Source: Saccostrea echinata (Eukaryota). From it: a stretch of 64,000 nucleotides of DNA. Positions 1-33,379 of this stretch are shown here, one piece after another. A program made the position numbers and the translations under genes. How positions within the stretch are numbered: position 1 is the stretch's first letter; the number at the start of each line of letters is the position of its first letter. The stretch covers positions 11,842,001-11,906,000 of the forward strand of contig NW_026889803.1 of NCBI RefSeq assembly GCF_033153115.1. Reading direction: 5' to 3'. Below the pieces are notes generated by a model. It worked only from the letters and a program-made list of their open reading frames with translations. It searched no databases and was not told the DNA's origin.

Positions 1-3
1 TAG

Positions 4-686
4 GTGGAATGGGCGGAATGATGTCGGGTGGAATAGGCGGTGGAATGATGTCAATGGGAGGCATAGGATCCATGGGCGGTAGTATGGGAGGCATTGGATC
101 CATGATGCCAATTAGTAAAATGATGGGAAGCATGGGCGGTATTGGATCTATGGGAAGCATGGGTGGAATTGGATCTATGGGCGGAATTGGATCTATGGGT
201 GGCATGGGTGGAATTGGATCAATGGGCAGCATGGGTGGAATCGGATCAATGGGAAGCATGGGTGGAATCGGATCTATGGGCGGAATAAGATACATGAAAT
301 CTATGGGCGGCATTGGATCCATGGGCGGTATTGGATCTATGGGTGGCATGGGATCCATGGGCGGTATTGGATTTATGGGCGGCATGGGATCAATGGGCGG
401 CATGGGATCAATGGGCGGCATCGGATCCATGGGTGGCATCGGTTCCATGGGCGGTATCGGATCCATGGGTGGCATGGGAGGTAAGTTATCAGGATAAATA
501 GTATTTGGTATTACTTTCATTCTCATATTCATAATTTGAATTTGTTTACAAGTTGATTTTCTTTAAAGATAAGGAAATCTCAATTAAATAGAAAACAAAA
601 TTATTTAAATTTGATTTGATAGTTTTGAAATAAATATGATTATTAATATTCTGTAAAAATTTTCATTACAGGCATGGGAATGAAAT
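4..686 (+). CDS. Gene A (partial): Gly/Met/Ser-rich (GG[I/M]GSM)n protein, abductin-like composition; exons 4-480 and 672-686
   Basis: tag acceptor at 1-3. The 477-nt phase 1-1 exon ends G|gtaagt at 480/481 and encodes tandem GGIGSM/GGMGSM. A 15-nt micro-exon (ttacag|GCATGGGAATGAAAT|gtaagt) continues the frame as GMGMK. The 5' end lies outside the window; the 3' end was not located (N gap at 728-890). Confidence 0.85.
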
Positions 687-727
687 GTAAGTGTCATTGT
701 TAATATATCTTTATGCATAATAATTAT

Positions 728-890
728 NNNNNNNNNNNNNNNNNNNNNNNNNNNNNNNNNNNNNNNNNNNNNNNNNNNNNNNNNNNNNNNNNNNNNNNNN
801 NNNNNNNNNNNNNNNNNNNNNNNNNNNNNNNNNNNNNNNNNNNNNNNNNNNNNNNNNNNNNNNNNNNNNNNNNNNNNNNNNNNNNNNNNN
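728..890. other. Assembly gap (N run)
   Basis: Run of n. Confidence 0.99.
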
Positions 891-2842
891 TTAGCTGGAT
901 ATTAATACTCTTCAACTCTCAGGGCCACCATAAACCGTTTTCATGTTTATTTTGCTTATATGTAATAAATATTTGCAGTATCAAAATGGATTTTATTTTA
1001 TATATGAACAAACTGTGGCTTAAATTATCAGTTGATGGTGGACCATCGGAAAATTGAATACAAAAAAAAATAGGAAAAACCCTTAATATAATTTTACTCA
1101 GAACAAGTGCAACAAATTCATTCTGTACTTTTGTTAATTTAATCAAAGAGTCATAATAATTTTGACAAACAGCAAAACTACTCTAACTAATTGTGACAAA
1201 TGTAAAATTCACGTTCAGCCCATATTTCATTAATAGAAATTAATTTTTTATATTTCACACAGATAGAGTATGTCATGACCTTAAAGGGAACTGATTTTGG
1301 CAATGATCATGTTGCAAACTTTGCAGTATTGAACAATCAACATGGATTTAAGAACAAGCAATACTTTGAATTCTAATTCTTACGTGTACCAGTTAAATTT
1401 CCAGAAGTATTGAGTTACTTTTAAGAGAGGATAACAGAAGTCGTTTGAAGAGGCCTTCTTCATTTATTCTGATTAATTGTTTTCCAAGTTTTCTCATTAT
1501 GAGGAAATGTAAAAATGTACAGCTAGGTGGCGAAATTTGGGCGCTGTCTCAGAAAAAGCGATAAAGACCATTTGCGTTGAACACAAATAATATGAATCTG
1601 ATGCAACCAAATAGTTAGTAACCTTCAATGAACAAAACTAATATCAGAGGAAACTTTTTCACATTATATGTTTTGAGATCCTGCATGCAAAATCACATCT
1701 GTCTTGTTAACAATTTTACATGGAGGACCACAATTCATTTTACTTTTGTCCTTTTTAAATAAAGTCTGAAGATTGTTTTATTACTAAATTGAAAAAAAAA
1801 TCAATGATTTTATTGAACGACATATGGGTTAATCTTCTAAGAAATAATCTATACTGTAACAACATTACACAAAACAACCAATTTAAGAATTATGTATCTA
1901 TACACATTTTAAAATACGTTCAACCCATTTTATGTACAGTTTAGAATTCTTAATGTTATGTTTAGTTTTGAATCATTCTTAAATAAACAAATTAATTGGT
2001 AATTGTAAAAATTGCAATACAACTCATTTACTTTTTGTTGGAATGTCAATCATTTGTAATTGTTACTCATACTATAAAGCAACAGTTCAAAAATAAATTC
2101 CATTTGGTGAATAGATAAGCAACAAACTAATAAATTATTTAAATACACTACTTGTGGTAAATTTTTAAAAAGAAAATGAAGAAAAAAAAATTCAATTACT
2201 GGCAAAGAAACCGATACAAATTCAAAGGGAAACTACTATGCATTATTTTAAACAGATCAAGAATATATAAACCAAATCACAAATCCCATAGTTCCAAGAT
2301 TTAGGCAAAAATTCATTTAAAAAAACTTGGCATGCCTAATTTGCGTCACGGTTTTTCATAAATAAATCACATGGATTTAAAAACAAGCAATACTTTGCAT
2401 GTTAAAAATTCTAAAATATATTTCAAGCACTCTTGTTTACACCATCAGGTTAATACTAGTAATAACAGTTGACAGAATGCAACAAAACCAACTAAACGAG
2501 ACCTTACTCCTGTTAAAACTATGTCAAATAGACCCCCAAAAAAATTAATAACAAATTTTTAATTTGTATCAAATATCAGGCTTCACTGCTTCTGGATCTG
2601 AAAGTTATTTTAATCAGCAAAAGGTCTATTTTCTATGTGAAAAACATCGAACTGAAGCTCAAAAAGCTTATGAGGAATAAGAGAAGAAAATTATTCCATA
2701 AATCGACGTCGAGGTACAAAATTAAACATGTCCAACGCCAACTTCAAACTGAAAAGATAGTCAAGACGTACTATTGTATCTGATAATAGTGCATTTGATT
2801 AAGTATGTAAATTCAAAAGATGAACTAAACGTATGCTTTCTA

Positions 2843-4321
2843 CGAATGGCTGATCCAAATAAAAAGTCATAACTGCTTTAAAATCTTTAATAATCGAAAA
2901 CAAAATTTTACATACTAACACCTCTATCTTTTTTTTTTTTACTTTTGCTTTAAAATTTCATTCAGAAATATACAATACTTTTTAAAATATTAATTTAAAC
3001 ACAACGTTAAGTCTCGTCTATCGCCAATGGATAGAAAAGGTACTGACGTTCGTTATATATGACGTTCTTCTTCGGCACTCATTTTTAGTTCATCCATAAT
3101 ATATTAGTCTCTCACATGAACATTTTATTCATGTACACTCCCAACTTGTGCTGGAGCGTCTAGTTCTGACATATTTCATAAAAAATATTTTAACTTTTTA
3201 CATTGCATTTGCATACTGGTATTTATTACATTTTCAACAATGAAATACTGTGATTTATTCATTGAATAAAATTGATATTCCCTCACAGTGTGAAAGGATA
3301 CCAAAGTGATATTCTCTCACTGTGTGAAAGGATATCAAAGTAAGTAAAATATAATTTCTGGCCTGAAATAAGATTGAGATAGTAACTAAACCATCTTGAC
3401 AGAGACTAAAACTGCCAATTTCTTCCCAAATATGTTGCTTAAATTCATGTAACAATGTTTTCATCTCTCAACTGCTAAGCTATGACGTCTCAACTGCTCA
3501 TCTGTGACGTCACAGCCTATTACATTGTGTTAAGAAAAGACAGGGGCAAAGGGAAAATCAAAGAAAATGTAATAAATAGAAAATTCAATGTTTTGTAGTT
3601 GGATATGGAACTTATTTCACTCGTGAGACAGGATTTTTTGATATTTTCACTCGTGCTTCGCACTCGTGAAAATATCAAAAAATCCTGTCCCACTCGTGAA
3701 ATAAATTCCATATCCAACTACAAAACATTGAATATCCTCTATATGTATCGCTGTGCGTACATGTTTATCTTGAAAGCGTAGCGTCGGATTTCAGAGGCGT
3801 CGTGAAAAGGTCACACTTCCTTCTACTTAGCATCTGTTCATTTTTTGACTTCTTTTACATTGGTATTTTGAACAACTTTTGTATCTTTATAATGTTTATT
3901 ATTTCCTTCATTAGTTGTCAAATGTTTTGGAAATCAACTCTGGCGTTAAGTCAGGTTCTCAAACTTTTAAACATTTCAACAGAAGAAGAAAGTGAGTGGA
4001 CGATCAGTCAACTTTTAACATCACTTACTCTTGAATCTGACGATGCACATAAGATCTAAGCAAAAGGACTCAATGTAGAAATAACTTTGGTTATAAAGAT
4101 TTGCAGATGAACTAAAAATGAGTTTCTTTTTTTTTTTTGGATGAGATTGACAAAACCTAAGGTTGAAAGGTTATAAAAAAGGTTTTTTTTATATTATTGA
4201 AGGACATTTTTAGACAAAAATCAGAATATACAGGGGTATAAGTATGTAAAACTGTGTTGATAATATTCGATCAATAAAGATCTTATAGCAGTTTAGGCTT
4301 TACTTTTTGGTTCAACCCTCG
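2843..4321. mobile_element. Tc1/mariner-like non-autonomous element (long TIRs, TA flanks)
   Basis: Left ta|cgaatggctgatccaaa and right ttttggttcaaccctcg|ta. Internal arms are also inverted (actcatttttagttcatc near 3077 vs gatgaactaaaaatgagt near 4106). Same family as 24754-26023. Confidence 0.65.
3583..3733. repeat. Near-perfect ~150-bp palindrome (hairpin-type non-autonomous element end)
   Basis: attcaatgttttgtagttggatatggaa...ttccatatccaactacaaaacattgaat, centred on gtgc-ttc-gcac (3653-3663). Confidence 0.85.
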
Positions 4322-5556
4322 TAATTTTGATGAACATTCAATAAAAGTGAAGAATTCTGAAATTGAACAAGGTCGTTAACTTCATGTGACCTTTGTAACT
4401 ACATGTTATTGCTTACATGCTCTATGACTGGTGTTTTATAATGAAGTCCTAGTCATTTACAAGTATTCGTAAAGGGGTACCAAATAGGACCATAAGACTC
4501 CTTTTGTCTTCATACCATTATGTTGCAGTTGGAATGGTCTTTTGCTACCATCTGGCTTGTCCAGAATTTGTCGCTAAAAATTGTTAGACTACACGATTAT
4601 TGTGCAGTCCTAAATACAAAGTCTAATTTTTTAATCATTTTTGTAGTCAAGGGTTCACAAACATGTCCTTACACCTAAATGTAAAAAAGATAAAAATGGT
4701 GTTTCGGATGAATGTTCTATCATTTCTACATCTACGGTGACCAATCAACTCTTAGTTTTAAGACTATTTTCACTTTTTGGTTTCAACAGTGAACGTACTT
4801 GGGACTTACCATTGATGAAGCTTAAATGTTTGGCTGATTAAAATATGTTCTTGCACTGAATACTCTTTCTTGTCTACATTTGATCTAGATTCTTTTTTTT
4901 CATATCAGGTTTGATAAAGTCTGCATCATATTTTACACTGTCAGAGGGGTAAGTTGAAAGCTCAGCACATTCCTGAGCTACGGTAACAGATCACAGAAAA
5001 AAAGGAGCGGATCGAAATCTTTGTTTCGCGAAGATGTGTCATCAAGGATTGTCTGTAACAAATTATACATGCCCGTTTGTAGTATTACACATTTATTTGC
5101 ATTTATTGTTTCACTTTTGTACATTTTGTGGAAATGTTCTCATTTATTTCTAGATATATGATTCACAAGGAAGTCCTTAAAAGAAATCCTCGTTAGTCCT
5201 ATCCCTGTCCATTTTTTTTTCTTTTTGATTTTCCACTTTTAATAATTTGGTAGTGTATACATAAAAGACTTGTCGTATTAGATATGTTATGTCATGCTGA
5301 AGGATATTTGCCATATCAAAATATTGCTTTTCTTACAATTTGCTTAATGATAGAATGTCAGAAAAGAGGGTTTGCTTTTGATGATTTTGACTTGATATTT
5401 TTAAAACAACCGCAGCGAAATCGAAGATAAAAATATTAAATTAACAATCATTGAAAGCAAAGACTACAGTCCAAATGGTCACAGAAGCTCTAGTATTTAT
5501 CTCTTCTACTCAATTTATCATAAATGCGTACCTTTATAAAATACATAACATTTGTT

Positions 5557-6443
5557 TTTCACATAAACCGTATCAGAATTATTCATCATTAATTAAAATT
5601 TAAAAGTATTTTATTAAGGAATATTTCGAAGCCTTTGTAGTTTCTTCTCATTTCCAAAGTATTCTTTATCGATATGTACCATCAATTACACTTTTTAAAT
5701 ACTCTGTATTTTGCAATTCAATCAGTCTTAATGTATAGAAAATACCAACATGATAAAAATTGATAAAAAGTAAACTACACTCTTATCCTTTTTTACATAG
5801 CGATGTATTTATGCATTAGAAGACATACGCAGAGCACACAGTATGACTGGCCAAACAAAATTTTGCGACCAAACTCTACTATTATGTTGTCAATTTTGAA
5901 TTTACTAGATAGAGGTACTAGTAAATACAAAATTTTATCATGTTGCAAATTTTGCATTTACAGTGAACCGCCATCTAGTAATTCTAAATTGACAACATGA
6001 TACCACTATTCAAAACGATCGCAGTTCCAATATAACGTCTTTTTATACTTTGTCACAAATGCATACACAAAAGTTGTAAGATTATCCTGCCTGTTTCCTT
6101 TACAATTTACAATTGAACGATCGATGCCTAATCTTTTTCTAGGTAGTCAATGGTAAAGTCTAATTTTTAATTGCATTTCTCTTTCACATAAACTGTAACA
6201 AACTTGTCAAGAATCAATTTTTGTAATTTATTAATTTATGAATATTTGAGGCCTTTTTAGTATCTTCTCATTTTCACAGTTTTCTTTATCGATATTACCA
6301 TCAAGTATACTTTTAAATGATATACTCGTATGTACTTTATGACAGTTACAATCAAGTCGGTCTTAATGTTGACAATGTCTTGATAAAAAATAAACCAAAC
6401 ACTTAAACTTCATGTACACAGTCCTCAGTATGACTGGCCAAAC
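5557..6443 (+). repeat. Diverged direct duplication (~5557-5856 vs ~6182-6443) upstream of gene B
   Basis: Collinear shared blocks: tttcacataaac, gaatattt..gcctt..tagt.tcttctcattt, ttctttatcgatat..accatcaa, gtcttaatgt, and an exact cagtatgactggccaaac. Confidence 0.75.
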
Positions 6444-6676
6444 GAAACATTTCACCAGAATAGTAGACTTTATCATTACTAAATACTGACTTCCAAACTT
6501 TTTCAAAAGCAGCAGTATTAGCTGACTTCCTGCCAATTATTCATCGTGTACAAACTTGGTTTTACACAGTGAGGGATGTCGGAGAACACAAATCTGCAAA
6601 GTGATCACGTTATTTCAGTCATTAAACATGTCACCTTCCTATGTGTCGAAACAACCACATTCGCAGAAAGTGCTAT

Positions 6677-6684
6677 TATATAAG
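6677..6684 (+). promoter_or_regulatory. TATA box of gene B (TATATAAG)
   Basis: Lies upstream of a short non-coding exon ending gctgaag|gtgagg at 6747. Confidence 0.6.
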
Positions 6685-7041
6685 TAACCCAGGAAAAGAA
6701 CCTTTCACGAGAAGTTTGTCTCCCGTCAAAATAGTTTGCAGCTGAAGGTGAGGTTATTCAAAAGATAAGATTATGCAGTTTGATTTTATTCTAAATCTAA
6801 AGTGATTTTCAACGTCTCCTTTGAAACCGCTCTTACTGGTCTATTTCTGAAATGTTTTAAGCTTATGGTGTATTAGATATTTATGATGTGCGATTCAAAT
6901 ATTAATAACATTTGATCTGTTCAAGTTTTTAAATTCTAATAATTCGTAGAAATGTTGAACCTAAAGGAAATATACCCTGATTTCTTCTATTCTTCTCGTG
7001 ATAATTTTCATCTTTTTTCTATCGATTCATTTTTATTTCAG

Positions 7042-8110
7042 ATGGCAACGTACATGTCTTTCATTGTTTTGTTGTCTGTGTCAGCCTTAACTTTTGTCCA
7101 TGGTAAGTACTTTATATTTTAAGTTAAAGGCATTCAATTTACATTTTTTTTTATAAATAAAGATTATGCAGGGAGTATTTAATGATTGAAAACAATGTAT
7201 TTTGATCTAAGAATACTATATGAAATGAACACGAAATATTGATTGATAATTTTTGCTACACATAACTTTGAATTTCCAAGATTAGTACTGAATTAATATG
7301 TATTTATTGAACATAAAGGTGATTTCTACACAAACAATTGATAATCACTTTATCTTAAATATTTTCATTAAACAGGTATCAACCTAAGTCAGAATAGTAA
7401 AAAAAAAATGAAATGAATAATTTTTAGACACTGTCTTTTAAGGAACTCTTCATCCCTTGATTGACATATTGGGGATTTTTTTTTTTAATTTAACAAAAAA
7501 CCTCAGTATTTTATTTAGACAAGAAATTAATCCAAACCAATAATAATATGTACGAGACTGTAAAAACAACCCATAAATTTTCCATTAAGGTTTTCCATAT
7601 AGCCGCACGGGCATGTTGGTGCTTCCTATAGGTAATAACGCTGAGGAGCCGGTTCAACCTATGATGATTATCCCATTCAAAATTGGCCAACAACCAATGA
7701 TGCCAACGATGCCCATGATGCCTAAGCCCATGATGATGAACATGATGCCAATGATGAATAATAATGCCAACTCGAATTCCATGATGCCCCAACAACGAAT
7801 GGAGAGACCGGAAATCAAAACAGATGCAGGTTAGTGGTATTCAGAAAAAAAGCTTTATTGCTTATATTCCTTTGAAAGTATTTGTTTCTTGCAAGAAGGA
7901 ATATTTTGCTACATAGCCCATTAATATTAAAATGCAAGTTATGATGATCGAAATCAGCGAATTATAAAACTGATTTTTATATTGATTTATTCAAAATCTT
8001 TGAATACTTTCAGATACAATATTTTACAAAATACGATGATTTATATTTATAACAATTGATATTTTTTTTTTTACTTGTTTTTAGCAGGTAGAAAAACCCT
8101 GGAATTTTGA
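7042..8110 (+). CDS. Gene B: secreted Met/Pro-rich protein, ~107 aa; exons 7042-7102, 7590-7829, 8088-8110
   Basis: tttcag|ATG. Signal peptide MATYMSFIVLLSVSALTFVHG, phase-1 gtaagt. Exon 2 FPYSRTGML...QQPMMPTMPMMPKPMMMNMMPMM...KTDA. Last exon GRKTLEF*. AATAAA at 8212-8217. Confidence 0.8.
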
Positions 8111-8287
8111 ATATTAAAAGACTTTTACCTGAGCTGTTCTTTTTCACCGGAAGTGACATTAAAATATTAACTGTCCTTCACTAGTGTCTGTGATACTTTA
8201 TGTAAATTTAGAATAAACATTTTTAATTTCGAAGATTCCTTAATCTTTTGCATCATGCCATTTAGGTTCTATTGCTTATAATGGATG

Positions 8288-8410
8288 AAACACGGAGATA
8301 ACGAACAGTAATCAAGCTCAAAAGTCCATTGAAACAATAAAAACCGGGAGCAGAGCAAACACGGACTTCTAAAAACATCAGAGGTGGGATCGGGTCCCAT
8401 GGAGGAGTAT
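8288..8410 (-). mobile_element. Short 3'-terminal remnant of the Penelope-like element family
   Basis: ggagataacgaacagt...gagcagagcaaacacggac...agaggtgg...ccatggaggagt matches 12013-12135. Confidence 0.7.
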
Positions 8411-9483
8411 TTTACTGTGAATAGTCTGATCCAACAGTAATAGCTCTGGATTCCAACAACTTATTTCCAATCGTTCTGCGAGCAACATGATTAAAACAAA
8501 TGGTGCTTCCTGAATATTGGAATTTGGCTAAAATTCTTTTAAAAAATGTTCATAAACAACACAATGAAGCGTGGTATATAAAATAAACTTATGAAAGCAG
8601 GCGTATTTTTCCAAGGAAAAAAAAAAACAAAAGAGGGAAAAAGAGTCTCAAGCGACGTTTTGTTAAAAAAAATTGTAACAGACATATTTTTTCTACAGAT
8701 ATGATTTGATGACAATATTGTATAGTTATTCGTTTTAATTTGTTATTGAAAGTTTTTTTAATTGATTAAAACATAGAGTTAAATAAAACAAAAATATTTG
8801 ATAACGATTTTACTGGCTTACCTTATAAGATTATTTTTTATTTATTATTAACGATGTTTTATCGTTCATTAATGGGAATAAATTTGCTTTGGGTAAACTT
8901 AATTTATGTACAATTTGCGATCTGTTTCAAGATTGCAATCTAAGACGTATATATTTCATGCTTGATCGAAGTGCAAATGACATCAGTGTCTTAATATTTC
9001 ATGGATCTTTTGTTCTTGTTATTTTGTGCAGAACACGGATTTTAACGACCGGAAATGAAATGTTCTACGATTAATGGCGTCGTGGAACATTCTAAGTTTG
9101 ATGATGAATTGTATCTTTAAACACACAAGGAGATAAAACTGGCGCATTTCCTACATCAGGTGTGAACATCTTCTGACAAGAACAGTACAAAAGGCGTAAC
9201 ATATCTGTAGATGTTATCTCTTCGTTATCATTAGCAAAAAGCCACACTAATTACATAACACGAATTTCCAAGCTATAATTTTATTCGTAAATCATGAAAC
9301 AAGACTTTACAACATGGATCATTTGTATTAAGAAAAAACATTTTAATCATGCATAAAGATTTATGTCAAAATGGAAAGAAATTACAATGTATAGTGTTAT
9401 ACCCTAACTAATGTGCAACAATTCGAGGGTGATCACTTAATATGGCAACGATTTTGAAGTGTAATGTTTTTGATTTGTTTGTA

Positions 9484-9990
9484 TCAATAAATATGCTTTC
9501 CTAACAAATCGTTTAACATTAAGTCTCTAACAGTGATCAGGTTTGGATTGCCTTGTCGTTGTTTTATGATAGGGCTCAGTGGACTCAGGTTCCAGTGACG
9601 ATGTTTCTGTGTCCATGTCGACATTTTCGTACTTGGATTCTTCACTGAAGAGCCAGAGAGTGTGTACGAAATTCCTGTGTGAGCTGAAAATGACATGACT
9701 TTGCATTTGATGAAAGTGTTTAAAGTTAATGTTCAATTTTTTTCTCTCCAAAATGAATATATAGAAATTGACATAAAAACTATAGTTATATAGACAACAT
9801 TATTCAAATGATAAAAGATTACGACGCACAGGTTATGTATTAGTAATGAACAGATAAGATGGTAACAAAAGCATTTATTACATTTAAAAAAATGATTTAT
9901 AAAAATATTTATCTAACACTTACCTGAACCTTTCGATACAATATTGAACAGAAAAAGAACCCAGAAGACAGTCACATTCGATTTCATCAT
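9484..9990 (-). CDS. Gene C: small secreted basic protein, ~88 aa; exons 9990-9924, 9683-9484
   Basis: Signal-like MMKSNVTVFWVLFLFNIVSKGSA ending in phase-1 gtaagt. Acceptor ttttcag|CTCAC; the frame continues HTGISYTLSG...LLGKHIY*. Upstream non-coding exon donor at 10724 and TATATAAA at 10775-10768. Confidence 0.7.
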
Positions 9991-10767
9991 TAAATCTAAA
10001 ACTGAAATATTTAAATTTCTATTAATCATTTTACAGCTAAATAATCAATTATAGGTTACTAGTAACATTTATGCTCATAAAATATCATAAATCAAATTAT
10101 ATCTTTTCACATCTTATCGATGTCATTTCCAAGCTAATATCCTGCGTGTTAGATGTAGAATCATAAATTCTACCGAAAAAGAAAGTTTCTTTTCAGAAAG
10201 AAAAAAACTCCAGGTCATCTTGACTTTGATTCCTATCGTCCCATGTTTGCAGGGAGAATGGGTAAGGTAGCATAAGAATCTCTCTCTCCAATCTTAAATC
10301 TTAGACCTAATTTTTATTTCTGTTATTTTATCTATCCCTGGTAATTTTTAAAACCTAAAGTCTTTGTATATCTAAAATTTCGCTAAATATTGTCCCTTCT
10401 GGTACATGTATATTTTATTTTGTCGAGGAAAAAGGAAGTAAAATATGTCACAAATACAATACATGTATTTGGTGCTGCCAGAATGTATTTCATTCTAATC
10501 AAAGAATTTAATCTTTTTATTCACAACATATGAAAGAGAAGTTATATATTATAAATTGAATGTTAAATGAATATATAACATTTTAATGTGTAAATGTGTC
10601 GGTTATTTTTAAATCAAAAGACACATTACCAAAGACAGGTATCGTTAAATAATCAAGAGCTCTCATCTAAAAATCTTTTACTATTGACGGGTAATATATT
10701 TTTTTTTTAAAAAGATATACTTACAACAGAATTGTCTTCATGTGATAAAAAGTTTAATAACTTCACA

Positions 10768-10775
10768 TTTATATA
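10768..10775 (-). promoter_or_regulatory. TATA box of gene C (TATATAAA)
   Basis: About 45 nt upstream of a gtaagt donor (10724-10719) on the minus strand. Confidence 0.5.
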
Positions 10776-11918
10776 AAAAGTCTTAACAGAATCGAAAATT
10801 ATACAAAACTGTAAACATGATTGATAATATTTTCAAAAGAAAAATCTTTCAAATGCTTCTTCCCTGATTAAGTTATCGTTCATTAAACTTTATGATAGAG
10901 AATTTGTCATCAGTATGAAAAAGTTTATTTGTAGGGACATGAAGAATTGTTAACAGTTCATTGAATTTTTATGATGAAAGAAATGTATGAGGATTAAGGG
11001 GGTTAGCATTCTTTAGATGTCGGTCAAAACAAACATTTTTGGTTAATGTTGACAAACTGCCCTGCCATTGTTAAGACGGTCTGAATTTTTATTGTAAGTG
11101 GAATGACTTATAGTCATTTTTCTTTGTTGTTTATCTGTGAAATTTTATATATATGCTCATCACCAATCATGCATTGTCGATCATAAAATCGTTGACAATT
11201 TCACAATTTGTCAAGTCTACTCAAATGTACAGGGCAAAGATTTTTTTTCATTGTTGTATGTCTGTCTGTGTCAAAATTTTATTCGTGCCATAACTCTGCT
11301 AATCAAACTTTAGTATGCTGGTGCTCAGGATTTAAAGTTCGTCCAGATCTTGTCTCAACATTGATGTCAAAGGGCAAAATACATTGTAAATTGACTTGAT
11401 TGTTTTTAACTGTATCGACGATTACCTAATTTAAGTTGTTTCACAAGGGTCATATATCTGTTAAATGGTGGTTGGTTCACTTTCTTTGCATGAATATGTT
11501 AGTTATGCATGTGTTGTTGGGGGAGGGGGGATTTTCGTTAGTTTGTTTGCTGTTTTTGTATTCATTTTCTTCTTCTTCGTCTTTTTTTTTGTATGTTGTT
11601 TTTTAACTTCGTGATTTGGAAATATGCAAATCAAAAAAGAACAAAAAACAAAAAACAAAAAAAAAAACAACAAAAAACAAAAAAACTAAACAAAACTAAA
11701 CCAAAAAAAACCCCAAACAAATCGACAGACAAACAAAAACAGAAACAAAAAAAATGCATAAAAAACAAAACAAAAACCAGACATGCCTTATCTTACGAAA
11801 AACATACATGTATTATCTCACCACTAAGCATACAATGAATTGGTGATATGAAGTTCTTCCACACGAAATATTTATTAATGATTAGAACATGCCAACTGTG
11901 ATGAAATACTTGAAAGTT

Positions 11919-11957
<39 letters not shown>

Positions 11958-12012
11958 TTTTTATTTATTTATTTTTTTTTTTTGCATAATTTCAGCATTG
12001 CATATTTCATCA

Positions 12013-26023: not shown

Positions 26024-27763
26024 ACTACATATAAATAAGGAAAGTTGGAAAAGCTGGTCATCTCGTTTGTCATACACTTAGTTGTTAATTGGCCCTTATC
26101 GTCTATAGATAGTAAAAAATCCAAAACGAAAGAAATGTGACAGACTCTGTGGTGTCTCGAGTTCACTGGGATATTTCGAGTCATCATATAAATGCGTGGA
26201 ATTGATAAAACGTCGTCGATGTTTGTGAATGTCGACTTGAAGGCCACAGCAAGTGTTTTCTTCTTCTCAAGTAGAAGTTGTTTTTTTTTAATAAATTCTG
26301 CTTCATATGAATATAAAAAAGGTCTGCTAATAAAGGAGCAAAATTATTGCCAATCGAGTTCTAACAGTTTGTTGGAAGACCTGGTCTCCGAGACTACATA
26401 AATTAATGTTTTCAGTGAGGAACACCAATATCCTTTTAATATCATCTTCAGAGAAATTGTGTGTAGAATCAGAGTGATTTTTAATAAAGTAATTTCGTTG
26501 ATGACCAATGACAAAATACGAAAATTTCTAAGTTCTATTTTTATTGAAGAAGCTGTTTTCTATGACACCAAAAAGTCTAGTTTTTAATTTATCGTGAGAA
26601 ATGGTGGTATAAAGTGTAGAAAATTCGTACGTTTTGATGTTATTGACTTTTGAAAAAAATTGTGATTTTATATTTTCTAAAAGTTCTTTGGGGCTTTTGA
26701 GAATCGACATCTGATTTACACCACTTCTAGAATATGCTGTAGCACAGTACGTCTGAAGTTTCCCCTTAATAGCAGTTATATATTTGAAAGGGCTTGATAG
26801 AGCATGTGCTGAACCCAGCAATGTAAGGATTTACAAAATTCAGTACTACATGTGCTCGTGAGTATATTTAATTGTGTTTATTTTGCTGCCATTTAAACAT
26901 CGATTTGTGACTGTGCTTCACTGTATGTGTTTATGTTTAAAACTGAAGACTGAGAACTGTAAAATGCCACCAACAAGAACAAGTAGTAAATCTGAAAGCA
27001 ACATAGTCATTCCTAGTATGAGCTCACCAAGTAAACCAAGAACATGTAAAGAGTTACAGTCAGTAATAGAAGAAATTTGTCGTCTGAAAAGTGATCTTGT
27101 CAACAAAAAAGACCTTTGCTTAAAAAAAAACACACTGAAAATGCAATAAATTATTTTTAAAAAGTTTTTCTAAAATAAAATTATAATTATGAATCTTACA
27201 AGCAAAGAGATTGTTACAAACCTTGTCTGCTGGAACCATAACATATTGTTCAAGTAGCCTTTCTCGTTCTTTTATCACCTCCGATTTAGTGAAATCGAAG
27301 GATAGATGATTCGCATATTGCTTTTAAGTCTAAGACTGCTTCATGATCATGGAGCCAGGTATCTTTAGTATAGACAACTTTACGGTTAGTACATTCATTC
27401 AGTTTGAATCTTGGATTCAATGAAAAAGATTTTTTCTGTTTTTAGAAAACATTATAATTCAAGATGTTTCTTATTTAAAACTGAAAAATAACGCATTCTA
27501 AAAACATGACAAACACATTGTGTCGTCATTTATAAAAAGAATGACAACATTAGAAGAATCTACATCAAATTTATTTCTGTATTAAGTATATTTATTTAAC
27601 AACTGGATCCAGTTATCCTGTTTTCATAAGAGGATTTTCACCGGATTAAGCACCTGTAATTAACACTGAACATAGAGATACAGCCACATACATGTGCAGC
27701 ATAAACTGCTGATCAAAAACTTTTCAATAAAAAAACGACACAGTAACTTGTATATATATATCT

Positions 27764-28612
27764 TCAAAAATAGCTTGATCCGAAAAACCTACTGAGTTGG
27801 TTTCCCGCTAGAAATGACTGCATGGTAGATTGTCCAACGGCTTCCATCATGGCGGAACTCAGTATTTCGTCTGCACTTGGAACACGCAAGGTTGAATCGG
27901 TCCGGGTAGTGGGCATCATGGAGTTAAACAATAGGTTATTTGTTCCTGACATCGAGTTTGAAATTCCAGTCATCATTCTAGTAATCATCGATGACATCAT
28001 TGGATTATTTGTCGTCGACGTCAACGGAGAGGTCATCATCGACCTCATCTGATTCGTCATTGATGACATCGGATTTGACATCGTGGACATCATTGGATTT
28101 GTCATCGTGGAAATTATTGGATTTGTCATTGCAGACATCACTGAGGCAGTCATTCCTGTAGGGTTAGCTACGTTGTTGGGCATTGATGACGTCATATCAC
28201 GTCTGACAGAGTTTGCCATACCAGAGAGTATGCTGCTTTGGACTGGATTAGACAGCATGGACATCATGTTTGAAAGAGACATCCCAGTTCCCATAGCAAC
28301 AGTACCAGCGTCAGAAACGGCAGATGATGACATTGCAGAAGGTCTCTGCATTTGTGGGAGTAAATCGGATTTATTCCATTTCTTCTTGTAGTCTTTTGTT
28401 GGAGGGAAATAATATACTGAAATGAAATAACGATAATTAAGTACAGATTATGCTTTTACCTTTCAGTGAATCTATTTCAGTATATTATTATGAAAAAAAA
28501 ACTAATTCGCTTTTAAGGTTATGCATACAATGTACTAGTATTTACCTTTATAAGTTGCGCAAACACAGTAAAAATTCAGAAGCATCAAAAAGAAAAATGT
28601 TCCGGATTTCAT
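27764..28612 (-). CDS. Gene E: secreted Met/Ser/Thr/Asn-rich protein, ~239 aa, probable paralog of gene D; exons 28612-28546, 28416-27764
   Basis: Signal MKSGTFFFLMLLNFYCVCA followed by TYK, phase-1 gtaaat. Acceptor ttcatttcag|TA; VYYFPPTKDYKKKWNKSDLLPQ is in frame with ORF 27764-28351. Ends RFFGSSYF*. Confidence 0.85.
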
Positions 28613-28697
28613 TCTTAGTTTGGTATCCTTGTCTGAGATATAATCTTCTTAATTTCTTATTTAACTTTCGTTTTTTATCTATAGGAGGTAGCTTGTT

Positions 28698-28705
28698 CTT
28701 ATATA
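28698..28705 (-). promoter_or_regulatory. TATA box of gene E (TATATAAG)
   Basis: About 90 nt upstream of the ATG; identical octamer to gene B. Confidence 0.55.
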
Positions 28706-29267
28706 TCTTCTTTTCAAGACTACATATAAATGACATATTTCATTTGTCCCATGACCAATTCATCAAAACAAAGAGTAAATGGTCAATCAACTAAAAAACT
28801 GCTAAAGAATGTGTCATTTGAAAAGTAATTTGACTGGAACAATTAGGAATCGTTTCTTTGTTCTGTGGAAATTACTAGAAATTTTATTGATGGAGTCAAT
28901 TAACATTAAAATTCTTATTTTAACATGTGCATTCTAAACCTGTTCTATTGGGGCAATTGTTATTTCCAATTTCTGTTATGACTTTAAAAATGTTTACTAC
29001 TTATTTTTTACACACTAGATAAATAAAGATGAAAATAATTAAGCTTTTTTAAGTGATCTGGTCTACAATTTTAATAATATATTGTATTTATCGCTTGTGT
29101 ATGATAAAAAAACCCCACTTTTTCGAGAAAATTGTCTTTAACATCCTTTCAAAATATTTATTTTATATCTACTAGAATCACTAAAATATTGGCTAAGAAT
29201 TAACTAGTTCTACATAATATACATGTATATCATTTGGTATATATTCCCATTCACTGTTCACGTGAAT

Positions 29268-29428
29268 TAAGGAATAACTGTCTAATTTTTTGGATTCATG
29301 ATGTGATCAATCGAGTGGCTTGCGTGATAATTTGCATAAACGCCGAAGGCGTTTATGCATAAAATTATCACGCAAGCCAATCGATTGATCATCGTCATGA
29401 ATCCAAAAAATCTGACAGTTATTCCTTA
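29268..29428. repeat. ~160-bp imperfect palindrome (hairpin element) between divergent genes E and F
   Basis: taaggaataactgtc...gacagttattcctta, centred on cgcc-gaa-ggcg (29341-29351). Confidence 0.85.
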
Positions 29429-29724
29429 TATTTACATGCTCCTGATTCTGCAAATTCCCGTGCTAATAGCCCCGCTTCTGTCTCTATTTGTCCCGCCCCG
29501 CACGTGATTTTTTTTAACCGCGCCTATCGATGAACCAGTAGATTTATGTAGAAATAAAGTATTTTTACAATTTGTAATTTTATCTCGGACAAAGACATTG
29601 GAAATGTAAATATTTTCGTATCAACATTCATTGTTTTTATTGTGAAATAAAAAACTATATAATTAGTGGTCAACTGTTCTTCCTTGTTTGTCAGTGCACA
29701 GCACTGCCAACAATCATTACACGG

Positions 29725-29732
29725 TATATAAA
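29725..29732 (+). promoter_or_regulatory. TATA box of gene F (TATATAAA)
   Basis: About 100 nt upstream of the ATG at 29826. Confidence 0.55.
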
Positions 29733-29825
29733 CAGGTGTATGAACTTAAAAATCATTTGACAAATAATTAATTCATTCTTGACCAATTTCAGAATGTAAG
29801 GATTCTCGTGAAGGAAGTCAAACTA

Positions 29826-30353
29826 ATGGCCGTTTTCCTATTTCTTTTGAGTTTGTATCTTGGACCTTCAGTCTCTGGTTACAGTTACAGTAAGTTCATG
29901 GCGACTTCGGCATAGTTTCTAGTGGGGTTTTCGTCGATCCTATGAGAAACATGTCTGCTTTCAACCATCAATCTAGCCCCTCCAATTTCTGACACTAAAA
30001 ATGTTTAAATTTTTTTTTTTAATATTGCAGATTATGGAAATTCCGATAACACCTTAAGTATGCCCCTGCCTTTTGTCGGGAATCTACTTATGCCGGCTGA
30101 CTTGCTGCTAACTACGGCCATCCTCCCCGCCAAAACCAAAATGACGGGGATCAACTTTAATTCTGATGACGTCCTGTCATTGATGGCATATATGTTCTAC
30201 CCTAAAGACTTCACTATGACTTCCCTTGCAACAACTATTATTGAGCATCGTCCATCAATGAAGAAAATATTCTCCAACGTGTCCAAAAGGAGGGTCATCC
30301 CTGGAACAAACGTATCCGTATTTGGAGGTATTTATATACTTGTAGGGGTTTAA
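29826..30353 (+). CDS. Gene F: small secreted hydrophobic protein, ~128 aa; exons 29826-29889, 30031-30353
   Basis: Signal MAVFLFLLSLYLGPSVSG followed by YSY, phase-1 gtaagt. Acceptor ttgcag|AT; NYGNSDNTLS is in frame with ORF 30060-30353. Confidence 0.75.
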
Positions 30354-31962: not shown

Positions 31963-33379
31963 TCAGTCGCTTCTCTTGTGATGGACCACGTTCTTCAGGA
32001 CTGGCCCAACATACCATTTCCTTAGAGTGTTTTCCATCAGATAGTCAACTGACCTATCTATAGGTTTAATGATGAAAGGAATGGAGAGAAGCCCGACGGC
32101 AGTGGTGGTCCACTTTCTGGTTGGTCCAGGCCACGTGGTGGCTTTCTTCAGAAGTACCTCGGTGTACGTACAGATGCGGTTGATGGTGAATCCTGGGATA
32201 GCGACAGACGCCAGACCCTGCCAGATTAGTGTGTCTACGATTGCCCATCCAACACGTAGTCTCTTCTTACGTTCGTCTTCAAATGACTTCTGATTAAAAT
32301 ATACAAGAAACATTGTACAATTAAGCATGCAGATTTTTTTATAATTGAAATTGAAGATTTACAGTAAATAACATCATTTGTTACTGATGTTTCTGGCCTC
32401 AAGACATTAAATTGAGAACAGGCTGAAGTCAAAATTTTGATTTTGAATATCTTAACTTTTATTTCACATGGCCGTAGGAACCGGGGGAGGGGGCATTTTT
32501 TTTTTTTTTTTTTTTGCTTGTCAAGAAATTTTTGGTAGTTGATAGTGCCCCCTCAACTGAAAATGTATGGCTGTGCCCTCCCCCCCCCCCCCCCAACTGA
32601 AATTGCTTCCTACGGGCCTTGTTTCATGTACGTGTTTGAAAAATTGCATTTTAGCCTAGAATATTCAAATGCAAACGCAGTTGAAAATTAAATATATTCT
32701 GTTTGATTCTCAAAATCATTTTAACAGTTACATCAATTTGAAAGTCTGTTCTCAGTTTATGGTCTTGATGCTTTATTTATACTTAGGGTGTACTTCCCTG
32801 TTGATGCGGAAATATATCTATCGACTGGAGGAAAACGGTTATTATTTTTCAGTATTGTGCATGAAAAATTGTTTTCCAAAATGACCCTTCTAATGTATTC
32901 ACTGGCCCCTAAGTAATAAGGTCCAATTATTGAAATCTGGTCAAAAGATCTGGGAGAGTTTTAGGTTTTCTGATCTAGCCAATACTTATTCCTTCAAACT
33001 TCCATAAAATCTTAATTTAAAACTGATGGAAAGAAGGTAATTACAATAGAGATGGTCTGTGCCCCTGATTACCTGAGATGTTTCCCAGCCTTTATGTATG
33101 GCATCCGCCACCACATAACCACTAGCTACAACATAACTGAGGTAGACCCATTTGACGGGAACCTGGGCACGAAATGCCTCGCCTACTTCATTACTGTATC
33201 CTGCAATTTATAAAAAGTTCTGCTTTCATTGATTGGCAGAAAATAAAATACATGTTCTGTATGTGCTTTTGTCGTCTTATTTTGACGTTCAAGGGATAAT
33301 AAAAAGATACTGTACCTAGGTAACGCACGTGTGTATCTCTAAAGAAATCTACATCTCCCTTTTCAATGTCATTTTCCAT
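31963..33379 (-). CDS. MTFP1: Mitochondrial fission process protein 1 (MTP18), ~172 aa; exons 33379-33316, 33200-33073, 32289-31963
   Basis: Family motifs DFFRDTHVRYLGYSNEVGEAFR, YVVADAIHKG, DTLIWQGLASVAIPGFTINR, IPFIIKPIDRSVD; GT-AG introns with consistent phases. Confidence 0.93.
32467..32621. mobile_element. Small MITE in MTFP1 intron 2
   Basis: ccgtaggaa ... ttcctacgg inverted termini with G and C tracts. Confidence 0.5.

Follow-up and report, generated by a model that had tools for sequence, protein, structure and literature searches.

A bounded cluster of small methionine-rich genes

The window analysed here is a 64,000-nucleotide stretch of the Saccostrea echinata genome (contig NW_026889803.1), with coordinates counted from its first letter and negative values given to sequence upstream of it. 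Positions 4–30353 hold six gene models, A to F, which form the downstream half of a cluster of about 67 kb; taking the window together with 40 kb upstream of it, this cluster comprises 11 small genes, nine of which encode Met-rich proteins (15–37% methionine) that are predicted to be secreted and largely disordered. An earlier note on this DNA had proposed a small Met-rich gene cluster of six genes at 4–30353. The six genes stand, and the cluster is borne out by its reading frames, by in-frame gene models and by a shuffle control, but its extent is roughly twice that claimed, with five further Met-rich genes in the 40 kb upstream, including three Gly/Met “abductin-like” paralogues of A.

In the window, long stop-free Met-rich frames lie at 3–494 and 7589–7831 on the plus strand and at 20339–21193 and 27767–28447 on the minus strand. 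The analysis covered 204 kb, in which eight stop-free frames of 60 aa or more contain at least 15% Met, with the frame of gene E, at about 15%, falling slightly below this threshold; all nine are located between −38.2 kb and +28.4 kb. The mean Met content across 664 frames was 2.5%, the highest values outside genes were 9% and 13% (the latter in an antisense frame of A), and no frame of at least 60 aa at 15% Met was found in twenty composition-preserving shuffles. Four of the six models in the window, the number given previously, have 15–25% methionine against this 2.5% background; C and F are not Met-rich. Met-rich frames were absent from the next 100 kb upstream and the 35 kb downstream of the cluster, and none accompany the sirtuin-like, NIF3-like, MTP18 and RPA1 genes carried by its flanks. 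The end of the cluster is marked by the first ordinary gene downstream, MTP18/MTFP1, which has an exon at 31966–32328 (minus strand). Between models A–F, over 30 kb, no housekeeping gene was seen, in keeping with the earlier note, and the only other elements found were repeated remnants of RT-like elements.

A common architecture runs through these genes. All six window models are in frame with canonical GT-AG introns, and in each a signal exon of 61–79 nt with a phase-1 donor leads into an in-frame second exon. The signal exon ends in phase 1 in all 11 genes of the cluster, and in seven of them the ATG is the first triplet behind an acceptor. A phase-1 intron behind the signal peptide is, in general, a frequent feature of genes for secreted proteins. 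When read by eye, each of the six N-termini has a hydrophobic core and small residues at −3/−1, from which the proteins are predicted to be of a secreted type; most models also have Tyr at the protein ends. Exons were searched singly, and lengths and frames were computed for the joined spliced models. The resulting lengths for B to F (87, 88, 301, 239 and 128 aa, respectively) agree with the 88–301 aa claimed before, and the statement that the proteins possess no recognisable globular domain held up in Pfam, which returned no significant domain for any exon of the window genes or the upstream genes. No coding exon crosses an assembly gap: gaps 14370–14501 and 17925–18098 are intergenic, while gap 21943–22092, which lies 533 nt upstream of the ATG of D, may contain a 5'UTR exon or promoter of that gene.

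The Met-rich secreted-type gene cluster is real and bounded: adjacent genes have a common signal-exon/phase-1 architecture together with biased composition, with unrelated genes outside, as is expected of a tandem cluster. Genes A–F are real, or likely real, and likely lineage-restricted. At least three groups can be distinguished, namely the Gly/Met genes (A and three upstream), a D/E family, and singletons, the last being B, C and F in the window plus two upstream genes, one of which encodes a 750-aa Met/Gly/Pro protein.

Gene families within the cluster

The signal exon of A lies outside the window (−228 to −156, plus strand), so that the gene is partial within it, as had been noted. Its main exon occupies 4–480 on the same strand (acceptor AG at 2–3, donor GT at 481–482, phase 1 at both ends) and encodes the (GGIGSM)n-type repeat described earlier (Gly 46%, Met 24%, Ser 16%, Ile 11%, Pro 1%), with tandem periods of 18, 27 and 45 nt that yield GGIGSM-type units devoid of Phe. 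In the in-frame model there follows a 15-nt micro-exon (672–686, plus strand; G-M-G-M-K), which ends in K and a phase-1 T|GTAAGT donor, and the main exon of each of the three upstream paralogues closes with an identical donor. An unfilled assembly gap (728–890) falls inside the last intron; beyond it, guided by the tail exons seen in the upstream paralogues, we place a putative terminal exon of 11 nt (895–905, plus strand; S-G-Y-stop). Because this exon starts just 4 nt past the gap, within which its acceptor tract falls, the 3' end of A is provisional; with the putative tail included, the protein would be 191 aa long.

A and its three upstream paralogues have the same exon structure, a YGP|G junction past the signal peptide, the MK|T donor and short Tyr-containing S-x-Y tails (putative in A). 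The upstream paralogues contain 38–53% Gly, 35–37% Met and 1–3% Pro in repeat units of the form GGMGGGM(M)N, and all four members are almost pure Gly/Met chains, low in Pro and with no acidic residues. Antisense Pro/Ile/Met frames over the repeats (e.g. 2–562, minus strand) were rejected as coding, because the signal exon, the splice sites and the paralogue tails are all found on the plus strand. A protein search with the main exon of A gave no significant relatives, two marginal unnamed matches being found among 8000 low-complexity candidates. Protein searches of the oyster's own genome with low-complexity exons recovered the query alone and missed a paralogue that is 85% identical, and are therefore uninformative on copy number. 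A bacterial match (0.76) to one upstream Gly/Met exon in the ESM Atlas was disregarded.

Gene B has a signal-peptide exon at 7042–7102 (plus strand), with a cag|ATG start and a G|GTAAGT phase-1 donor, and a second exon at 7632–7834 (plus strand) that contains 25% Met, 16% Pro and 12% Asn. Its Met-Met-Pro runs justify the earlier description of B as MMP-rich. The in-frame stop of B overlaps a possible G|GTTAGT donor, and a further tail exon is therefore possible. Gene C, a single-copy locus in the genome, is a candidate gene as judged from its model: a signal-peptide exon at 9924–9990 (minus strand; CAG|GTAAGT donor, phase 1) is joined to a second exon at 9484–9683 (minus strand), giving a protein with Tyr at its end.

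For D, a signal-peptide exon at 21332–21410 (minus strand), with a cag|ATG start and a phase-1 donor, precedes a second exon at 20336–21162 (minus strand) that encodes repeats of NPMxSM type and, at the C-terminus, a tail rich in Tyr and Lys. The junction is matched by the Saccostrea cucullata protein P0001, to which D is 75% identical by BLASTP and 80% identical in a pairwise alignment; a basic stretch soon after the signal peptide reads KKRQR in D and KNRQR in S. cucullata. The ESM Atlas held no usable match for D. In gene E, the signal-peptide exon (28546–28612, minus strand; phase-1 donor) is followed by a second exon (27764–28416, minus strand). The part of the protein encoded there is Tyr/Lys-rich at its N-terminus, continues with a helical segment that is conserved and with disordered repeats rich in Met, and closes with an aromatic C-terminal tail. 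Both the junction and the length of E agree with the C. gigas model LOC105335596, and the N- and C-terminal segments are invariant in its orthologues in C. gigas and C. virginica. The AlphaFold model of E has a mean pLDDT of 51, with values below 50 in the Met-rich repeats. Public ‘Logan’ ORFs of E relatives run through the intron; they are therefore genomic and uninformative on splicing. No papers were found in a literature search for K1QVI4 and LOC105335596. Profile comparison identified a homologous segment in D and E (82% probability, E 1e-5), and the two follow a common plan in which a short helical domain leads into Met-rich repeats and then an aromatic tail. Both had earlier been characterised as M/S/T/P/N-rich; the second exon of D contains 22% Met, 20% Ser and 11% Pro, and E has about 15% Met.

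Genes E and F are divergently transcribed, with a spacer of 1.2 kb between them. The signal-peptide exon of F (29826–29889, plus strand) has a junction matched by the S. cucullata orthologue P0004, and its second exon (30031–30353, plus strand), which is not low-complexity, may instead end in a splice site at about 30329; the AlphaFold model has a pLDDT of 54, which, like that of the E model, is too low to support a fold search. F is conserved across four oyster genera (Saccostrea, Crassostrea/Magallana, Ostrea). Public models from other ostreids reproduce the splice junctions of D, E and F, and orthologues of these three genes were found in true oysters (Ostreidae) only, which accords with the orphan-like status suggested for them. 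In C. virginica, the E and F orthologues have consecutive gene ids on one contig, so that the adjacency of the two genes appears to be conserved.

Likeness to known ligament and shell proteins

Scallop and pearl-oyster sequences were compared with these proteins by eye, with abductin residue positions taken from the published description. Abductin is the elastomer of the scallop hinge ligament (Cao, Wang & Bayley 1997); as described in PMC13052691, it starts with an Ala-rich stretch of some 20 residues, in which Cys occupies positions 6 and 10 and Tyr positions 4 and 20, and continues into a Gly/Met domain very low in Pro with the decapeptide consensus GGFGGMGGGX. A and its paralogues are likewise small and of a secreted type, with an Ala-rich leader that fits in part in its Cys and Tyr positions and then a Gly/Met-rich, presumably random-coil domain whose low Pro content (1% in A, 1–3% upstream) matches that of abductin. 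The repeat unit of A, however, is GGIGSM-like, with Ile and Ser in it and without Phe, and the paralogue units come closer to the consensus. In the leaders, Cys6 and Tyr22 are found in A, Cys10 and Tyr20 in two paralogues and only Tyr19/20 in the third, and Tyr4 occurs in none. Moreover, abductin is a pectinid protein, whereas here four tandem copies with micro-exon/tail-exon structure are found in an ostreid oyster.

The ligament methionine-rich protein of Pinctada fucata, LMP (Suzuki et al. 2019; PMC7591529), is a secreted, very Met-rich ligament framework protein, in which a YGP motif and Met/Pro runs come after the signal peptide, with (MMMKPD)n repeats and a C-terminal tail that contains Tyr. 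Met-Met-Pro runs of a similar kind occur in gene B, which lacks the YGP motif, while a YGP junction is present in A and the three upstream Gly/Met genes, and the upstream 750-aa gene has a Tyr-Gly plus basic, Met/Pro start behind its signal peptide; both of these motifs are too short for statistics. No MMMKPD-type hexapeptide repeat was found in B or any other gene of the cluster. Since the protein search with A returned no significant relatives, the likeness to abductin and LMP is one of composition, short motifs and published residue positions, and that to LMP, being low-complexity and short, may bear on working mode and not on membership. D and E are unlike any characterised ligament protein.

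The organisation of the locus has parallels elsewhere. The SCPP and epidermal differentiation complexes of vertebrates and the shematrin/KRMP-type arrays of molluscs are clusters of small genes with a signal exon, a phase-1 intron and fast-evolving repeat exons. The tandem layout here is the same, although the Met-rich chemistry and the lineage differ.

Possible functions and their implications

The reading that we favour, at roughly even confidence, is that the locus is a tandem cluster of 11 ostreid genes for extracellular structural matrix proteins secreted by mantle epithelium, most likely into the hinge ligament. A role in the ligament itself is plausible, a candidate function that we hold at a little under even confidence. 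Because Met-rich proteins are reported from nacre, prism and ligament, composition does not separate ligament from shell layers, and the products could instead serve as an insoluble framework in the calcified shell layers or the periostracum, with the mantle edge or pallium as their source and no specificity for the ligament. We consider this rather unlikely, although the insoluble proteins of Pinctada fucata do contain Met-rich regions in nacre and prism as well as in ligament, NU-5, a nacre protein with Gly/Met/Pro repeats similar in composition to the upstream 750-aa gene, is expressed at very low levels in the mantle isthmus, and MRNP is a Met-rich pearl-oyster nacre protein. NU-5, P,NU-5 and MRNP34 are secreted matrix proteins that resemble the cluster products in their Met-rich repetitive regions with Gly/Pro, but they are large nacre/prism proteins with acidic (Asp/Glu-rich) regions or other domains; to our knowledge, ostreids make no nacre. 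The proteins of the cluster, by contrast, are small, its Gly/Met members are nearly non-acidic, and a Pinctada study found that the acidic regions of shell-layer proteins are missing from ligament proteins. The leaders of the Gly/Met members, in addition, partly fit the description of abductin.

It is less probable still that these are secreted proteins with no scaffold role, such as mucus or cement components, Met-based copper binders, oxidant scavengers or peptide precursors. Binding of Cu(I) by Met-rich motifs is known from other systems, and the KKRQR stretch near the signal peptide of D, the strictly invariant C-terminal segment of E (a possible recognition or peptide motif) and the small, conserved, non-repetitive F would all suit such roles; yet repeated peptide units with dibasic flanks are absent, the counterpart of the basic motif of D in S. 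cucullata is no canonical convertase site, repeat exons this long are typically found in structural proteins, and terminal Tyr enrichment recurs in most members. Finally, we regard it as quite improbable that tandem duplication and the expansion of repeats have produced the neighbourhood as a side effect, without shared regulation or a shared material, in which some models (especially C, possibly B) are not genes. A conserved upstream DNA block is confined to the three closest upstream paralogues, transposon remnants are scattered among the genes, B and C have no orthologue support, and about 0.3 signal-like ORFs with a consensus GTAAGT donor are, by our estimate, expected by chance in the 31.5 kb scanned. 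Duplication alone, however, hardly explains why three unrelated-looking Met-rich families adjoin with ordinary genes outside; the E–F adjacency is apparently kept in C. virginica, and C combines a strong acceptor with an in-frame exon of 66 codons in a genome of 31% GC.

If the genes do encode matrix proteins of the mantle epithelium, the flexible Gly/Met or Met/Ser/Pro chains might act as entropic springs or as a framework around mineral fibres, with Tyr at the mature N- and C-termini providing points for oxidative cross-linking, and their diversity would have arisen through tandem duplication, with the signal exon conserved and the repeat exon behind it free to turn over. A bolder proposal, which we regard as doubtful, is that abductin, LMP and these oyster genes derive from one ancestral pteriomorphian ligament gene whose YGP phase-1 signal exon was kept while its low-complexity exon was repeatedly replaced. 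The MTFP1-adjacent locus would then be a ‘ligament gene complex’ encoding the full set of elastomer and framework proteins of the oyster hinge, comparable to the SCPP cluster for vertebrate mineralised tissues.

The composition of the oyster hinge ligament is essentially undescribed, the known bivalve components being scallop abductin and a few pearl-oyster proteins, and no report on the genomic organisation of bivalve ligament proteins was found in the literature searched. Should the products instead belong to shell layers, the cluster still reveals D/E as a new Met-rich family specific to oysters, whose members combine an aromatic tail with a helical head that is conserved. If the cluster supplies the ligament, it would provide a compact parts list, comprising elastomers of Gly/Met type, framework proteins of Met/Pro and Met/Ser type and their cross-linking ends, along with a series of naturally occurring repeat variants on which the design of protein elastomers could draw, and a route to asking whether bivalve orders share the origin of their ligament proteins.

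Extent of the methionine-rich cluster

The earlier note described six small genes, A to F, at window 4-30353, four of them (A, B, D and E) Met-rich, and this observation as a whole is confirmed here and extended by five further Met-rich genes upstream. Examining 140 kb of upstream DNA (204 kb in total; negative coordinates lie upstream of the window), we found all five in the nearest 40 kb, where these secreted-protein genes span -38700 to -6800 (upstream stretches L005, L007, L004 and L006). They include a Met/Pro/Ser/Asn exon of 295 codons (-38199..-37315), a minus-strand Met/Gly/Pro exon of 753 codons (-31313..-29055), and three genes of a Gly/Met abductin-like kind (35-37% Met), whose main exons lie near -24500, -15330 and -8700. 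The cluster, at 11 genes over ~67 kb, is bigger than first described. The next 100 kb upstream held no Met-rich genes; motifs of ordinary genes (sirtuin-like, NIF3-like, BTB and ankyrin) are visible in its ORFs, and downstream the cluster is followed by MTP18/MTFP1 and then by RPA1. Across the 204 kb examined, eight frames 60 aa or longer contain at least 15% Met, with that of E just below this level, and all lie inside the 67 kb; 20 shuffles yielded no Met-rich frames, background Met being 2.5%.

Repeated elements are found among these genes. The 1.2-kb spacer between the divergent genes E and F contains an inverted repeat of ~180 bp (29259-29438; 87% self-complementary), which may represent either an inserted MITE-like element or a regulatory hairpin that the two genes share. 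The stretch that separates D from E includes a 140-bp tandem repeat (25216-25608; 2.8 copies, 76% identity). Degenerate copies of one reverse-transcriptase-like element are dispersed through the cluster, at 12382-13298(-), 26017-26821(-), ~-53400, -18200, -11900 and -2500; the longest has a YIDD-type motif, and none of the copies gave a Pfam match at E<=0.01. Each of the upstream Gly/Met genes is followed, 0.5-2 kb further downstream, by an element of ~170 bp, 80-84% conserved among the three (L007 ~7575-7720; L004 ~5567-5730; L006 ~2985-3160), that looks like a SINE-type repeat rather than an exon.

Gene models and shared architecture

The window (~31% GC, within a 923-Mb assembly) contains four long Met-rich open frames. 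A scan of 31.5 kb for signal exons, defined as a start codon followed by a hydrophobic core and then a splice donor, identified a signal-type exon 5' of each of these frames, together with two extra exon pairs corresponding to genes C and F. Only four candidates in the scanned 31.5 kb carry a consensus GTAAGT donor, and they belong to B, C, D and F; the E signal exon uses GTAAAT. Each of the six models keeps its reading frame across GT-AG introns, with phase 1 at the junction that follows the signal exon, and the model lengths of 87-301 aa (A being partial) agree with those first reported. The second exons are composed of Gly46/Met24/Ser16/Ile11 (%) in A, Met25/Pro16/Asn12 in B, Met22/Ser20/Pro11 in D and Ser19/Met15/Thr11 in E, and are unremarkable in C and F. 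No Pfam domains were found in A-F. The C locus is single copy, and C is likely to be a gene.

Four N runs in the window (728-890, 14370-14501, 17925-18098 and 21943-22092) were left as gaps, with no sequence filled in, and ORFs drawn over them, which translate as X, were discarded as artefacts. The coding exons of A-F are clear of these gaps, apart from a putative 11-nt terminal exon of A. Because the gap at 728-890 ends 4 nt before this exon, its acceptor tract is unread, and we infer the 3' end of A from its paralogues. The gaps at 14370-14501 and 17925-18098 fall in the 10 kb that separate C from D, and that at 21943-22092 lies 533 nt upstream of the D start codon; since this codon abuts an acceptor, an untranslated first exon of D may sit within the gap or on its far side.

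In all 11 genes the signal exon is 61-79 nt long and ends in phase 1, and in 7 of them the ATG is the first triplet past an acceptor. Three further features unite gene A with the trio of upstream Gly/Met genes: the junction reads Tyr-Gly-Pro|Gly; the main exon, or in A a micro-exon, closes with Met-Lys and T|GT; and a very short final exon contributes Ser, Gly or Ala, and Tyr. These four are paralogues. Profile comparison identified a segment common to D and E (82% probability, E 1e-5), which is predicted to be helical in E (pLDDT ~80), the Met-rich repeats of E being predicted to be disordered.

A possible phase-1 donor, G|GTTAGT (7826-7840), coincides in part with the stop codon of B; donors of this type are also used in A and in the 750-aa gene upstream, and B may have a short tail exon. 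In D, a basic KKRQR stretch (21130-21162(-); KNRQR in the Saccostrea cucullata counterpart) lies 8-13 residues past the predicted signal-peptide cleavage site and could be a propeptide processing site, albeit not a canonical furin motif. Lys/Arg residues occur in the head and tail regions of both D and E, from which tryptic peptides are expected.

Relatives in other oysters

Homology searches were run exon by exon, one at a time. The best protein matches of D (75%) and F (81%) were both from S. cucullata, where LOC134254519 matches D end to end, splice-junction residues included, and LOC134254533 reproduces the F junction. With weaker matches in Crassostrea virginica, Magallana gigas and Ostrea edulis, F is conserved in four oyster genera. 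These matches place the organism among the ostreid oysters, nearest to Saccostrea. A full HMMER scan recovered four clear relatives of the E second exon, among them C. virginica LOC144626250 and C. gigas LOC105335596; the latter, at 239 aa, equals spliced E in length and spans the identical junction. Some public ORF calls of E relatives (P0030 and P0046) run through the E TGA stop as Trp and through the E intron, and were rejected as artefacts that arise when prokaryote-style gene calling is applied to oyster DNA. In C. virginica, the gene and protein ids of the E and F relatives run consecutively on a single contig, and in S. cucullata one contig carries the relatives of both D and F; part of this layout is therefore probably conserved. 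The label 'orphan-like' was a fair one, since no relatives beyond Ostreidae passed.

Ligament and shell-layer readings

Abductin, the scallop hinge-ligament elastomer, is described as having an Ala-rich N-terminus of 20 residues (Cys at 6/10, Tyr at 4/20) and then a Pro-poor Gly/Met domain with GGFGGMGGGX repeats (review, PMC13052691). When compared with this published description, A has Cys6, Tyr22, a fitting composition and low Pro, and two of its paralogues have Cys10 and Tyr20, but the repeat of A is a different one. In the ligament methionine-rich protein (LMP) of Pinctada fucata, a YGP motif follows the signal peptide, and the protein also contains runs of Met/Pro, an (MMMKPD)n array and a tail with Tyr (PMC7591529 supplement). 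The motif, the runs and the tail all occur in the cluster, although spread over different genes, whereas the hexapeptide array is absent from it. These likenesses bear on how the proteins may work and do not demonstrate membership of either family.

Nacre and prism proteins of Pinctada are Met-rich too, so a role in the shell layers stays alive as a rival to the ligament. A biomaterial reading of the cluster is plausible: we judge an extracellular structural role to be probable, and assignment to the hinge ligament specifically to be tentative, its chances falling a little short of even. Tyrosines are present at the ends of A, D, E and most upstream members, at the N-terminus of F and at the C-terminus of C; B as modelled has none. 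In the mechanism proposed, the mantle epithelium would secrete the proteins once the signal peptide is removed, and the chains of Gly/Met or Met/Ser/Pro would remain disordered; linkage through terminal tyrosines would turn them into a network that is rubbery and insoluble, or into a framework surrounding aragonite fibres.
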